A DNA stretch of 64,000 nucleotides from Paragordius varius (Eukaryota; Animalia; Nematomorpha), in the NCBI GenBank assembly GCA_964247055.1, contig OZ176055.1:2480001-2544000 (forward strand), written 5' to 3'. Shown here in pieces: positions 11,209 to 18,099 of this stretch; within the stretch, counting starts at the first letter, position 1, and each line of letters begins with the position of its first letter. A model generated the notes under the pieces. That model worked only from the letters and a program-made list of their open reading frames with translations. It was not told the DNA's origin and ran no database searches. Made by a program: the position numbers and the translations under genes.

Positions 11209-12714
11209 ATTAAGAATAAATTTATAAAAATAAAAATTTATATTAAAACACTTTCTCTGGAGCTATATTATATATCACAAGTCTACTATACAACGTCATT
11301 TCACATCCTTATCTAGTCTTCTTTTTTGTCCAAAATCTCTGATAATATAATTGTAAAAAATTTGGATTTTAAGAATTATTATGATATTAACGCTAAATAA
11401 TTAAAAAACTAAAACAACAGGGAACATGGTAGATTATTGTATAATCTTTAGTGAATATAGCTTACGCATGTAATAAATTATGTTGAAATTTTTTTTAAAA
11501 AAAGGGCCTTTGGCCTTTTGTATCATTATATTAAATCATTTAGTTTCTGAAAACTCGTTTATAAATATTATATAAATTGTTTTAGGTGGAAGTGATGTGC
11601 TTAAATTTGGATGGATGTCATAAAATTTGTAAGACATGTTATTGCATGAGACTTATTTTCGAAAAAATATGCTACAATAGAATTGAAAAAATTCCTATAA
11701 TATCACCTAAAAAATTATTTATAATAAAGTTACCTAGAATACTGACTGCAAAAATCTTTGTAACATAAAATTACTTGTTTGTAAACTCTATTACACACTC
11801 TAGAGTTTTGCATCGAAAAATTTTAACTTGTTAATATTGTAAAGTTGTAAATAATTTTTAATGCAATTTTTATCATATATGAGACAAAAGGCTTTATTTT
11901 TTACAGTTTTTCAATTTCTATTGTTTTATATTGTGATAGATCCAAAACTCGATTAAACAAACAGCTAATTTAATGAGACATATCGATATTTTCAATCTAA
12001 TTTAATTAATTTCCATAATTTATATTTCTATTATCCTAATTTTTGAAAATAAAGAAAAAAATGGCGATAAAAAGTTTGGGATGTGTTTAATTTTAAGTTT
12101 TTTAAAATTTATTAACACTTCACATTTTCACACTTTTGTCCTTGATAACATATTGAGGTTATATCTAAGAGCTAGTCTTATAATTGAATTATTGTTTCAA
12201 AGTTATTTTAGTTGAAATTTAATTATCAAAAATTTTCTCCTGTAATAGATGTAAAATATTTTTTACAGTTTTGTAATTAGAATCTATGGGACAGCACCTA
12301 ACATCATTTGAATATATAGGTCATAATTGAGTAATATCAAATTTTTCCTGGTAAAATATAATCTAAATGATTAAAATTAATCATATTTTCTAACCATAAT
12401 ATACATTTGCCTATTGTGTAAGCGATTTGAAAAAATCCAAGAAAAACAATGGAGGCCAAAAAGATTAAAATGATGATTTACATTTATTTTTCGGTATTAT
12501 GGGCTAAAAAAACTTATTTTTTAATTCGTCTTAATACCTTAATCACTTTTTAAGATATATAAAGTTTAAATGGCTCTCTGATATTAACCCCATGTTTATG
12601 TGAATTGTGAAAAATGCATTTTTTTAATTTGGTCCAATATCTGTGCTTTTTAAAATATAAAATAACAAGATATAATAACCCCAAAAGATATTTAAGTCCT
12701 AATATTTAGGCACA

Positions 12715-13053
12715 TGTTATGTATAATAACTAAATTGTTTTTGTTTATTGTTATGTCTGATATTTCGGTTCCTATTCGGCTCACCAAACTACCGAGATCA
12801 TGGCCTACCCTAATCTTCGTATTTGTCCCCTGACAGATCTGATCTAAGAACATCTCACTCAAGTGGACCTTTCTACGACCGCTAAACACAGGCACAGAGC
12901 ATAATTGGTTTGGGTTTGCTGCTAGAAAACCCGTTTGATTAGCAGAAGCTAATTTCGCGATAGGCCATGATCTCGGTAGTTTGGTGAGCCGAATAAGAAC
13001 CGAAATATCAGACATAACAATAAACAAAAACAATTAAGTTATTATACATAACA
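12715..13053. repeat. 339-bp foldback occupying the 3' LTR slot (93-bp inverted arms, 153-bp spacer)
   Basis: 12715-12807 is the reverse complement of 12961-13053 at 91/93 positions. It follows the purine tract AGATAGGAGA(TA) on the minus strand. Confidence 0.92.
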
Positions 13054-13068
13054 TATCTCCTATCTAAT

Positions 13069-16000
13069 TTAAAAGTGATTTGTGTATCTGTCAGGGGCTT
13101 TTCGGTTTCTGGTAGGATAGCGTCTCTCGACTGGTACTTCGAGGCTTGGGGATTCTGCAATCTTATCGCCGTTGGGACTTTGCTGATTATTGTGGAAATC
13201 TTGACAAATATCCGGGGAAGGATTGGTATCATCATTATTAATATTGTCATCAATAGGAGGACCATGCAATGGGGTGGCTATGATATTATCAATATTATTC
13301 TGTTTCCGTTCCAATTCTTTAGGGTCGTCTAGCTTAAGTTCATCGGGACCTTCTTTTCGCCTTCTTAATTGATCCGTATGCTTTCGTAAAACCCTCCCTC
13401 TATCTAATAATCCAGTCCGCTCTACAACTTTTCCCTCTCGCCAACCGGCTTCCAACTCATTTTTTATAAACACTTTCTCACCTAAAACGAACTCACGTAT
13501 ATTATCTGAGGTACCATCGATATAATCCTTTGGTTTGCCTTTCATCCAGGACAGCGGTGTTGGTATATTTCGTTTTAGGAATAGTCGTGCAGGTGTCTCA
13601 TTTATACCATTGTGATGTGCTGATCTGTAAGCCCACAGTACCTGGTTTAACCGGCGTTCTGGATCTGCTACTTCAGAACACATATAATAGTGCATTTTCA
13701 ATGTTTGAATGACCCTTTCCACTAAACCATTTGTCCGAGGGTGGTATGGCGCAGAGGTTACATGTTTGATATTAGAGGAACTTAATATTCTTTCAAAATC
13801 ACCGGACTTAAATACGACGCATTATCAGTTACGATCATCTCTGGGGTGCCATATCGTGCAAACCAACCTTCTAAAACTTTCAAAATACTGATCGAGTTCA
13901 CTGTTTTAAGCTGTGCTACTTCACCCAACGGGTGCAGTGATCTATAAGTATGACCCAGTAAAGGTTATCTACGAGCCCCGCTATATAGAGATGCAATCGC
14001 TCCCAAACGTTGGTGTTCGGGTTCCATTTATAAGTCGGGCTTACTGCAATATTGAACCGTGACTTTTGACAATTTGAGCAGCCTTGCACCCATTTTTCGA
14101 TATCCTGGTTCAATTTCGGCCAAAACACACCACTCTTACCTAACGCTTTCATGGACTGTATACCAGGGTGACCTTTATGAAGATAGTTAAGAACATCAAC
14201 CCTCATGCTTTGAGGCACAATAAGGCGGTTACCTAAATATTGAAGGCCGTATGATTCTTCGATATCATTCCTCAGTGGTTTATAGGACTGCACCCCCGAA
14301 TGAGACCAATCATTAGTTTTTCGTGCTGCTTTAATCTGTTTACACGTCTCATCGCTCATAGTTTCCTTAAGCACCCTCTCCTTGTTTAAGTTTAACTCCT
14401 GACACCATAGCAACCGGACCTCCTGCGCTATATCCTCGTCATTGTCACACTCTTCAGTTATCTCAGTTGGTAGTCTTGATAGTGAATCTGCTAGGTTTTC
14501 GGTTCCCGGGTAGTACATTATGTTGAAGTCGAAAATGGATGTTTTTAAAATCCATCTTAGCAATTTACTATTGTTTAGCTCGCTTAATACACGTTGCTGC
14601 CCGAATAATTTGATAAGAGGTTTATGATCTGTTCTAATCTCAAATTTTCTACCATATAAAAATGTTTTAAATTTCTCTAGGGCCAATACAATGGCTTTTG
14701 CCTCTTTTTCTATAACCGAATAATTTTTCTCTGCCGGGGAACATTTTTTTGAAAAATATGCAATGGGTCGTTTACCTTCCGACGTTCTGTGCGACAAAAT
14801 GGCCCCAAACCCCTCCCCAGATGCATCCGTTTCTAGAATAAGGGGAAGTCTGGGGTTAAAAGGGAAAAGGCGGCTGTTATTCCCTATTAATAACTTCGCC
14901 CTTTCAAAAATATTTTGGTGTACCTCGGTCCAACACCATTTCTTTTTGGAACCAGCTAGCTGATGGAGTTCGTTAACAATTGTATTTAGAGAAGGTATAA
15001 ATCGTGAATGAAAGTTTAAGAGGCCCAAAAACGAACGGAGACTTGTTTTATCTTTAATGGGTGGACACTCGCGAATGGCTTTAATCTTACTGCTCGTTGG
15101 TTTTATACTTTTTTCTGATATAGTAAACCCCAAATATTCTACTTCCTGTTGAAAAAGCATTATTTTATCTTTTTTTTAATTTAAGACCCATTCGTTCTAA
15201 TCTTTCAAATACTTGTGTTAGGCTTCTATAATGCTCCTCATCCGTTTTCCCCGTAACAATTACATCATCTAAATAGACCGCTGTTCCCTTACAATCTCCT
15301 AATAGCTCATCCATGATTTGTTGGAAAAAACTAGGTGCGCACGACAGACCAAAAGGGATCCTAGTATATTTAAAAAACCCAAGAGGGGTGGATATTGTGA
15401 GAAGATTTTGAGATTCCGGATGCACTGGAATCTGAAGATAAGCATCTTTTAAATCTAATGTTGAAAACGTGTTACCATGTGAAATTTTGGAAATCAAATC
15501 ATCAAATGTGGGTATTATATATTGAGGTGTTTTAATGTATTTGTTTATTTAATATGTTTACTATAGGACTGGACCAACAAATTTTAGACTGCTTGGGGTC
15601 TACTGGTTCAATAATTTTTAAGGATACCAGCCTTTTGATCTCTTCACTTAATTTCTTTTGTAAGGCCAAGGGAACCCTTCTAGCCGGAAATACCCGTCCC
15701 CTACTATTGTTTTCTAAAAAATCTTTATGGGTTCCTCTTTCCAACAACCCAGTTTGATATCAAATAAAGACTTTATTGTAAATATCATTTGTGTGATATA
15801 ATTTATTAATATATAATTCGTTAGGCAATGGGATATTGAATAGCTGGATCCAATCCATGCCAAATATTAGAGGAAGATGTCTCTTCGTAATAAAGCATTT
15901 TGTTATCTTTTTTATTTTATTTAATTCAAGAGTTACAGTTGTCTCTCCTATTATGTGTAAAGGATTATTATCCTAAGTGTTTATGTTAAAATAAATGGGT

Positions 16001-16940
16001 TTTATTTTAGGCTTTCCTATTTTAACCCACGTGCTAAAATTTATTAAAGATATGTCGGCCCCCGTGTCGAATAACATTTCGACGTGGGTTGAGTTTATTT
16101 TTACATTTATTTTAGGTTTATTTACGATATTATTCACATACCTGTTTTTGCCAGCATATTTGTTTTGGCATTGGCTTCCGAAATGATTTCTACCCTGACA
16201 TTTGAAACATACCTTCCCAAACGCTGGGCAGCATCCGTATTTGTGGGCGCGACCGCATTTAAAACACGATTTTACGACAGGTTTGCGTCTTACCAGATAT
16301 ATTTCATTATTATTAATATTACCATCATTAAAAGTTTCATTATTATTATCATTAGTAATACCATTATTATTACCATTATTAATACTTTCATTATTATATA
16401 TTGCTCTCACTGAGTTCACTTCCAGGTGAGAATTTTCATACGCTAATGCCAAATTTAGAACCTTATTTAATCCCACTGTCGTTGTCTAATGCCTTTGGGT
16501 ACCTGTTCAGCAGTTCAGTCTCTAGTTTTTTCTCCTTCAACCCACATATAAACACGTCCCGTATTAATTCGTCAACGTTTCCTTTGAATTCGCATGCAGC
16601 GGCCATATTTTTGAGTCTTATAAAAAATTCCAAGAATCCTTCACCCGCTAATCGTTCCGCTCTAAAAAAATCGAATCGGGATAAAAAAGTATTTTTGGTT
16701 GGCTGAAATATTTTCACCCCAGCTTCATAAATCTCCTCCCAAATATATGTTTTCAATATTAACGGGGTAAAAGAATTGTTCCATTTTAGAAATGTTATCA
16801 ATACCGGATTGGGCAAGAAAGATGGCTTTAATATTTTCATTATTATCCTGTATTCCTTTAATTACTATTCTTCGTAAATATTTAATATATTCCGTAAAAT
16901 TATTATTGATTTTATAACTTTCAATACCTATTTTTTCCAT
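13069..16940 (-). pseudogene. Gypsy gag-pol, frameshifted
   Basis: Gag capsid-like (RLKNMAAACEF..IRDVFICG); twin zinc knuckles CFKCGRAHKYGCCPAFGKVCFKCQGRNHFGSQC; protease LFDTGAD; RT LDLKDAYLQ..RIPFGL..YLDDVIV; RNase H LETDAS..YSVIEKEA..TDHKPL; integrase HHCC, IVTDN, SAPYHPRTNGLVER. The first catalytic Asp is replaced (HLYIAG). Confidence 0.95.
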
Positions 16941-16985
16941 AATAATGAATACAACGTAATACAAAAAAAAATCGACCGCGTCAAA

Positions 16986-17312
16986 TGTAATAAGCGAAAA
17001 AAAAGGAATTTATTTTATATCATAAAAAACTATGTTCCATTATATATAGTTTTAGAGCGAGGTTGCATTTTTGCATAAGGTTAAATATTTCAATATTTAG
17101 ATGAAAGCATTCACAAGTTATATATTTGCACAAGGTTCAATATTACAGTATTTAGGTAAAAGCATTCACAACCAAGATAATATACATTTTTAGCGTAACA
17201 AGTACAAAGGTGTATTATGCACAAAGGTAAGGATATTATATTTTCATAAGGTAACTTAAATAAGATCAATTGAGTTAAGTTAACAAAAACAATTAAGTTA
17301 ATTTACATAACA
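16986..17312 (-). repeat. 5' LTR (327 bp) of the Gypsy element
   Basis: On the minus strand it runs TGTTAT..ATTACA with TATATATAA and AATAAA near its 3' end. It is followed immediately by PBS-like TTTGACGCGGTCG (16985-16973) and then gag. Confidence 0.85.
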
Positions 17313-18099
17313 GCACATTATGTAAAATATTTTTAAAAATTTACAATCGTTTCAGCGTAATCTCAAATCTATTGTCGACAATATTGTTTTCTGTAATTTA
17401 ATCACTACAAACACTAGTGACTTGATATGTCGCTGTTTCGGTAATTTTCATGTTTTCTGCTGTTTGTTAAGGACAAATTTTGTAGAAATTAAACGTTACA
17501 TGTTAATCTTGTTTACAATTTATAAATTAAAATTATAACAAAAACATTTTGTATAATGATTTATTACAAATTTAAGGATATTAGATAATCATCCACATTC
17601 TATATTTTAATTTGAAACAACCGATATTTTATTAGTTTTTACATGAAATGTTTTTATATATAAGGGAGGTAACACAGATGGCTTCGCGGGCCGCATTTTT
17701 GACTCATAAAATCCGGCGAGCCGCAAATATAAATATTTTCAACTCTAGGCGGATCTACTAAAATCTAAAACCCGCGAAAACCTGAAACTAACTTCTATAT
17801 TTTATTATTAAAAAAATATCTTATTAATATGACTAGATAGGCAATTTTTCGAAAAACAGTAGAAAAAAATTGCGGTACCTCGCCCACATGTACTGCTTTT
17901 AGATACTCAAAAAAAATTCTATAAATACATATATTAATTACCTTTTATTTATTCAAAAATTATTTTATTAATATAATATCCGCTGTAAAAATAACCACAT
18001 AATTTGTAAAGTATTTGTTCTTTTTGCGGTAAAATCTAGGATTGGCTTATTTTTAATTGGTTAATATATTATTCTGCTAGAATTATACATAAAATTTAG

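Follow-up and report, generated by a model that had tools for sequence, protein, structure and literature searches.

Capture of RNA-virus sequence by long terminal repeat (LTR) retrotransposons has mostly been deduced from endogenous viral elements (EVEs) that lie beside LTR fragments in rearranged clusters. Here we describe a Ty3/Gypsy retrotransposon copy from Paragordius varius, at positions 12715-17312 (minus strand) of a 64,000-nucleotide stretch of genomic DNA that we call the window (G000:C6:2480001-2544000, in a genome assembly of 110.6 Mb, 44 contigs and approximately 25% GC). In this copy the 3′ LTR has given way to a palindrome whose loop derives from part of the nucleoprotein gene of an orthomyxo-like virus. 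The event is of a known kind in an unusually complete form: the 3′ LTR is replaced, a snap-back is present, and both ends of the insertion are formed by the unique 3′ region (U3) of the LTR.

Among the closest described systems, capture of viral RNA by LTR elements has been inferred genome-wide in Aedes, where EVEs share the polarity of the neighbouring LTR elements (10.1101/127498). A copy-choice route to such EVEs is attributed, in the citations of that work, to proposals by Geuking et al. 2009 and Cotton et al. 2016. Like LTR-captured EVEs, the window copy joins non-retroviral RNA-virus sequence to a Ty3/Gypsy element, in the same polarity and as a germ-line insertion. Unlike them, it has kept the whole product together with its target-site duplication, its viral piece is palindromic, and this piece replaces the 3′ LTR from base 32 onwards instead of lying between retrotransposon sequences. 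The inverted U3 start at the right end of the insertion points to a plus strand primed at the polypurine tract (PPT) as the entry point, rather than to minus-strand copy-choice. Animal LTR elements are also known to switch template to cellular mRNA (PMC5131818). As in that LTR-mediated retroposition, a chimeric cDNA would here have been made by switching inside the particle and inserted with a duplication; the mRNA chimeras, however, keep both LTRs, have internal open reading frame (ORF) sequence replaced and have parent genes in the genome, whereas in the window copy the 3′ LTR is lost and the donor is viral and absent from the genome.

The palindrome and the termini invite comparison with other systems. 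[quoted passage not shown] As in that retroviral reaction, nascent DNA at the present locus would have folded back and been extended to its own 5′ end, but here the reaction is placed on the plus-strand start and the product was integrated. Ty1 integrase carries out concerted integration with U3-only donors and prefers U3 over the unique 5′ region, U5 (PMC8487063). The DNA transposons Ginger1 and Ginger2, which have terminal inverted repeats of 40-270 bp and 4-5-bp duplications, share with the window copy the TGT.../...ACA termini, terminal inverted repeats, a Gypsy-type integrase and short duplications (PMC2836005). Ginger elements have no reverse transcriptase, move as DNA and occur in families, whereas the window copy is single and has gag-pol, one LTR, a primer-binding site (PBS) and a PPT; a Ginger-type transposon or miniature inverted-repeat transposable element would be expected in multiple repeat-bounded copies with duplications of their own, and the 339-bp palindromic unit at this locus is unique. 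DIRS elements are characterized by a tyrosine recombinase, an internal complementary region and the lack of a duplication. The window copy is like them in that its retroelement ends are inverted rather than direct, but it has none of these three hallmarks: its hits are of the integrase type, and its duplication is a true one.

On the minus strand of the window, the pol order of the element is protease, reverse transcriptase, RNase H and integrase, as in Ty3/Gypsy, with an integrase core that is weak and frameshifted. The copy is decayed and contains many stops and frameshifts. It retains further Ty3/Gypsy hallmarks, namely a PBS after the 5′ LTR, a PPT, TG...CA ends and a short target-site duplication; in place of two direct LTRs it has one full LTR and 31 bases of a second. 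The natural copy L026 was used purely as a coordinate ruler. The features, in window coordinates, are as follows.

12710-12714, no strand: left copy of the target-site duplication (GCACA); the empty paralogous site has a single GCGCA.
12715-12745, plus strand: outer arm, part 1, consisting of inverted LTR (U3) bases 1-31 and forming the right-hand end of the insertion; 30/31 identical to the family LTR start.
12746-12807, plus strand: outer arm, part 2, the inner arm's 62-63 non-LTR bases in reverse complement, with one mismatch (12772).
12808-12960, minus strand: loop, a fragment of an orthomyxo/quaranja-like virus nucleoprotein gene in element sense; homology spans 12821-12958.
12961-13022, minus strand: non-LTR part of the inner arm, 42% GC, possibly nucleoprotein codons from about 33 positions upstream of those in the loop.
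13023-13053, minus strand: first 31 bases of the 3′ LTR (U3), in the normal position after the PPT; 31/31 identical to other copies.
13054-13065, minus strand: polypurine tract (AGATAGGAGATA), identical in six other copies, where it directly precedes the LTR start.
13072-14098, minus strand: integrase core and C-terminal region in three reading frames (rve_3, E 4.6e-5, below the Pfam cut-off).
13916-15160, minus strand: RNase H and integrase zinc-binding domain (PF17917, 5.8e-32; PF17921, 3.7e-15).
15165-15497, minus strand: reverse transcriptase fragment (PF00078, 8e-22).
15973-16476, minus strand: Gag zinc knuckle and aspartic protease (PF00077, 1.8e-5; zf-CCHC, 0.003).
16972-16983, minus strand: primer-binding site (TGACGCGGTCGA; four other copies have TGGCGCGGTCGA).
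16986-17312, minus strand: complete ordinary 5′ LTR of 327 bp, 98% identical to C5 and C7 LTRs over all 327 bases.
17313-17317, no strand: right copy of the target-site duplication (GCACA).

A repeat finder returned the two inverted arms at 12714-12807 and 12961-13054 (94 nt, 98% complementary, with 153 nt between them), which are mismatched at two positions only, 12732 and 12772. The same program reported a direct match of 13023-13053 to 17282-17312 (29/31) and an inverted match of 12715-12745 to 17282-17312. U3 base 1 is the exact endpoint of the outer arm. Folded as single-stranded DNA, the 339-nt unit has an energy of -115 kcal/mol (z = -22 relative to shuffles), and its own flanks are GCACA and TATCT. 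These results agree with the description given in an initial annotation of the window, made from its sequence alone: GCACA is present on both sides of 12715-17312, the 5′ LTR at 16986-17312 is a normal one, and the shared 31 bp, the terminal inverted repeats and a third copy of the terminus beside the PPT are all in place, as is a foldback of nearly LTR length after the PPT (339 versus 327 bp).

Around the point where the LTR is left, TGTTATGT recurs 3 bases past the junction and AACTTAA repeats flank base 31, motifs that are suggestive only. In a relative on another contig (L046, C7:4972568-4972630), LTR bases 14-31 are duplicated in tandem (18 bp) and flanked by two AACTTAA repeats; because of this duplication, the region of LTR base 31, where the window copy turns foreign, seems to be prone to slippage. 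We also noted a 12-nt exact inverted match between the loop (CCCCTGACAGAT, 12827-12838) and a segment 33-44 nt upstream of the LTR start (ATCTGTCAGGGG, 13086-13097), with unrelated flanks and a BLAST E value of 0.056 within the element.

The element-sense reading frame is open across the whole palindrome. An exhaustive phmmer search with this ORF against 1.84 billion protein representatives returned six proteins at E values up to 0.001, four of which (P0001, P0002, P0005 and P0006) belong to one family. The best match (E 8.8e-7) showed 52% identity over ORF residues 21-66, which correspond to the loop; the loop codes for approximately 46 amino acids of nucleoprotein. In an alignment of five sequences, 15 columns are invariant, falling in the motif KL-x2-ANQT, in the following Q-x2-S-x-PVF-x-G-x-R and in nearby single residues. 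Relatives occur in beetle, bee and moth genomes as 'hypothetical proteins', and on transcriptome or metagenome contigs of 1-2.4 kb as single ORFs. A profile built from 17 members of this protein family (A3) matched the nucleoproteins of Thogoto virus (E 4e-7) and influenza B (0.003), and in a search of the genome studied here it matched the window with an E value of 3.7e-13, the loop alone scoring 54.8 bits. An AlphaFold model of one family member (pLDDT 66) retrieved only orthomyxovirus nucleoproteins from the PDB, while the same model searched against BFVD retrieved nucleocapsids of insect orthomyxo-related and quaranja-like viruses, with E values down to 3.8e-20. We conclude that the loop (12821-12958, minus strand) carries part of an orthomyxo-like nucleoprotein gene, in the same polarity as the element. 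This is the point that the initial annotation overlooked: the structure is a chimera of retrotransposon and virus rather than an LTR that has been rearranged.

Other sources of the 277-bp core that lies inside the terminal 31 bases were also considered. None was found in the element, in the window or in 13 related loci; Rfam, tRNA scans, Pfam and phage and plasmid collections were blank or at chance level, and exact words searched in metagenome and viral contigs gave nothing above chance. Smith-Waterman comparisons with the LTR, the internal region and the LTRs of 17 diverged subfamilies stayed at chance, and the possibility of a diverged sister-family LTR was rejected. Of all the searches for a source, the exhaustive phmmer search was the only one to reveal the viral family. 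The GC content is 42% in the 63 non-LTR bases of the arm, 44% in the loop and 24% in the LTR. The peptide read in the inner-arm orientation matches profile positions 203-213 and is thus collinear with the loop, which lies at 247-292, a result equalled by 22 of 500 shuffles; translation in the outer-arm orientation gave no alignment to the profile, and adding either arm to the loop raised the profile score by only about 1 bit. The arm's 63 bases are probably viral too, from approximately 33 codons upstream in the same gene, although this assignment is not secure.

The right flank of the element has one diverged paralogue, located 80 kb upstream in inverted orientation. This paralogue (L061, G000:C6:2411600-2412500) is 76% identical to the left flank and 83% identical to the right flank of the element, and the matches are contiguous, overlapping by exactly five bases that form a single GCGCA (C6:2412091-2412095). 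The paralogue thus represents the empty site, and GCACA is a true target-site duplication. Since the empty paralogue has a single GCGCA, all of 12715-17312, palindrome included, is inserted DNA. The six full copies found elsewhere in the genome (L024-L029) have 5-bp duplications as well, five of them perfect, counting a segmental-duplicate pair, and one 4/5. The extent of the old inverted paralogue is C6:2411776-2412388, which pairs with window positions 12415-12714 and 17313-17612 at 76-83% identity. A dispersed repeat of about 73 bp also lies in the left flank (12515-12588), with at least 97 candidate genomic copies that are 78-91% identical, and ends more than 120 bp away from the insertion.

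We consider it probable that the window copy is a single old Ty3/Gypsy retrotransposition product, the cDNA of which was joined, within the particle, to RNA from an orthomyxo/quaranja-like virus to form a chimera. No process other than priming of the plus strand at the PPT is known to leave a DNA 5′ end at U3 base 1, and because the right terminus has its 5′ end at this base, its strand would have begun as plus-strand DNA. At 31 nt from the start primed at the PPT, reverse transcriptase would have moved from its template to viral RNA; after a second switch, within or between viral strands, synthesis would have doubled back along the first 94 nt of the same strand (or of a sister strand) and run off at base 1. 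The new 3′ end, complementary to U3 bases 1-31, could then have annealed to the genomic RNA in the manner of a surrogate strong-stop DNA and been extended as the minus strand through the whole element, after which normal plus-strand strong-stop DNA would have completed the 5′ LTR. Such a product would have a U3 terminus (TGT.../...ACA) at both ends, and integrase would insert it by a concerted reaction. The order of the template switch, copy-back and annealing steps cannot be fixed from the sequence. Because no R (repeat) or U5 region is present at its 3′ end, the window copy could not transpose again. Each step of the proposed pathway has a precedent in the systems described above. A described natural integrated LTR element with U3/U3 ends was not found in searches of the literature, which is no proof of the absence of such elements.

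An aberrant cDNA with two U3-type ends was one of three origins put forward in the initial annotation. It is the best supported of them, given the 5-bp duplications of the family, the empty site with one GCGCA and the outer arm ending at U3 base 1, and it was broadly right except that the viral capture had been missed. Several points nevertheless weigh against an origin by particle-borne capture. The pathway needs at least three postulated template switches in addition to normal strong-stop DNA, and the closeness of 339 to 327 bp has to be taken as a coincidence. The viral assignment of the arm's 63 bases is marginal. The start of the 5′ LTR and the inner copy differ at 2/31 bases, where 0.7 would be expected. 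Lastly, the junction between inner arm and PPT (13053/13054) is supported by the assembly alone, since the 31-mer there is common to all family copies and k-mer unitigs cannot bridge it.

The alternatives differ in when and how the palindrome would have arrived. If the 3′ LTR had been exchanged from base 32 onwards after insertion, virus-derived palindromic DNA would have been introduced during break repair, a scenario that we regard as unlikely. Palindromes and filler DNA can indeed form at repaired breaks, and the 339 bp of the unit are close to the 327 bp of the LTR that it would have replaced. Yet such a replacement, which had also been listed in the initial annotation, must stop precisely where the duplication begins and, flush with it, restore a U3 start that is exact and inverted, and an RNA-virus sequence requires reverse transcription anyway. 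Moreover, the arms are as diverged as an origin at the time of insertion predicts. When seven copies were aligned, for distances only, the window copy showed 52 private substitutions in approximately 4290 aligned bases (1.2%), the other copies having 4-23. Had the arms been identical at insertion, 2 x 1.2% x 94 = 2.3 differences between them would be expected, and 2 were observed; this match indicates that the palindrome is as old as the insertion.

Quite unlikely, in our view, is an origin in two steps, in which a 339-bp U3-ended snap-back was first integrated at GCACA and the body of the element was added later from a one-LTR circle or cDNA by recombination within the 31 bp. One crossover inside these 31 bp yields the exact structure seen here, and the 2/31 differences between the start of the 5′ LTR and the inner copy would be accounted for. 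This origin, however, requires two rare events, the second with merely 31 bp of homology, and a snap-back hairpin, with its single duplex end, would have to become fully double-stranded before integration. A free-standing 339-bp unit was not found in the genome, and a genome search of the kind suggested in the initial annotation, for free foldbacks or further copies with the same asymmetric ends, returned none.

An assembly or amplification chimera is very improbable. Long-read and amplified libraries do generate fold-backs, and the inner junction has no independent reads, but the outer part of the palindrome is present in Logan unitigs from samples X2/X3 and, from another study, X4. These unitigs cover 12281-12744, 12623-12773, 12779-12989 and 12841-12972 with zero mismatches. 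The unique left flank is joined to the outer arm in two of them (12281-12744 and 12623-12773, the latter from X4), the loop is contained together with 29 nt of each arm, and both outer-arm variants (12732 A and 12772 C) are present. The depth of the palindrome unitigs relative to the unique flank (447 versus 531, 200 versus 199 and 2.6 versus 2.2) corresponds to a single copy. The flank-arm junction, the arm variants and the loop are thus documented at single-copy depth in two samples from different studies, and neither the two arm mismatches nor the matching duplication would be expected of a chimera. Of the stretch for which the initial annotation had called for spanning long reads, short-read unitigs support the flank-arm junction and the loop, the inner junction coming from the assembly only. 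The viral fragment lies in host DNA, as it has host flanks with the duplication and single-copy depth in two samples.

Comparison with the rest of the family showed that the structure is confined to the window copy. Aligned to it, the six full copies are homologous from the first LTR base up to base 31 of the 3′ LTR, where homology ends, and their LTRs are direct, the two LTRs of a copy being approximately 96-99.4% alike. Genome-wide, at least 13 LTR pairs were found, each of them direct, with a spacing of about 4.3 kb (in one case about 1.9 kb). A normal LTR follows the PPT in 15/15 close relatives, and in diverged subfamilies the LTR start is unchanged. A second copy of the palindrome's 277-bp core was not found in the whole genome (110 Mb) at the level of DNA, pattern or protein. 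In the element no tyrosine recombinase was found, its hits being of the integrase type only. The family is therefore an ordinary Ty3/Gypsy family and the window copy an aberrant member of it, the outcome that the initial annotation had said would reduce the structure to a one-off: at least 13 other copies are ordinary. Its remaining proposal, a Gypsy lineage resembling DIRS except for its DDE integrase and replicating with termini that are inverted or split, has the structure of the window copy alone in its favour and is refuted by the direct pairs, the normal LTRs after the PPT, the unique core, the lack of a tyrosine recombinase and the reading of the two other facing LTR-start pairs as nested insertions, so that we give it practically no weight.

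A further chimera of a Gypsy element with the same viral gene is present in the genome. Profile A3 matched G000:C2:6212220-6212702 (E 5.8e-22) with its positions 21-172, which represent the N-terminal part of the nucleoprotein. The match belongs to a GC-rich chimeric retro-cassette at C2:6206929-6212744 (L066 3929-9745; L064 1435-2025) that derives from a different Gypsy family, its reverse transcriptase and RNase H sharing 50-55% protein identity with the window element. In addition to this reverse transcriptase-RNase H fragment, the cassette includes a host ORF of 423 amino acids in which laminin EGF domains are present. Segments of 456-770 nt, 97-99% identical and overlapping the start of the nucleoprotein ORF, follow one another in alternating orientation (zigzag), and judged by its sequence the cassette looks as though it has two copies of a segment resembling an LTR end followed by a PBS. 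The cassette shows that promiscuous switching with copy-back on the same viral gene occurred more than once in this genome.

The value of the window copy is that of a mechanistic fossil: it is a single dead copy of an ordinary family, not a new class of element, and it preserves one capture event whole, with the duplication, the empty paralogous site, the exact switch point and the copy-back to U3 base 1. It provides a concrete and testable capture pathway starting from plus-strand priming, shows the use of two U3 ends by integrase in vivo, and suggests that a hairpin whose core comes from a virus can be part of an insertion from its very formation. More broadly, Gypsy particles in this genome might capture RNA-virus sequence mainly at the PPT-primed plus-strand start rather than through copy-choice on the minus strand, the resulting snap-backs carrying U3 ends that integrase can use. 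We put this forward as a conjecture and regard it as unlikely. If true, it would describe a general route for the birth of EVEs, which the C2 cassette would fit; transcription from the 5′ LTR would meet a 94-bp hairpin with a stem that is perhaps partly viral, giving ready-made hairpin-RNA loci; and snap-backs of this kind could supply the starting material from which integrase elements like Ginger, with their inverted termini, arise.

Finally, we surveyed the arrangement of LTR starts across the family group. Of 72 such starts, 56 lie on the forward strand of the contigs and the other 16 on the reverse strand, several being clustered on C7 at 5.6-6.1 Mb. Only two other facing pairs occur among them, C2:14185161/14186110 and C4:12076381/12076783; they were considered as second cases and are best read as nested insertions with deletions. 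The first lies in a scrambled region of the window copy's own family (C2:14184735-14186110, L043 6735-8111), composed in order of a reversed piece of pol, a forward 3′ end with a full LTR, and reversed gag, leader and 5′ LTR. The second (C4:12076381-12080666, L062 3381-7666) belongs to a related subfamily, 81-84% identical, and is arranged head-to-head in the order 70-bp forward LTR start, reversed 3′ LTR and pol, forward pol and LTR, which is probably a nested insertion with a deletion. Two of the six full copies, C7:2897783-2902355 (L025) and C7:2947767-2952340 (L024), lie 50 kb apart, are 99.7% identical and have the same flanks and duplication; this pair is a segmental duplication, not the outcome of two transpositions, and both of its 3′ LTRs are approximately 65 bp short. 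The 5′ LTR of the window copy contains a 55-bp tandem repeat, 84% identical, at window positions 17062-17171.

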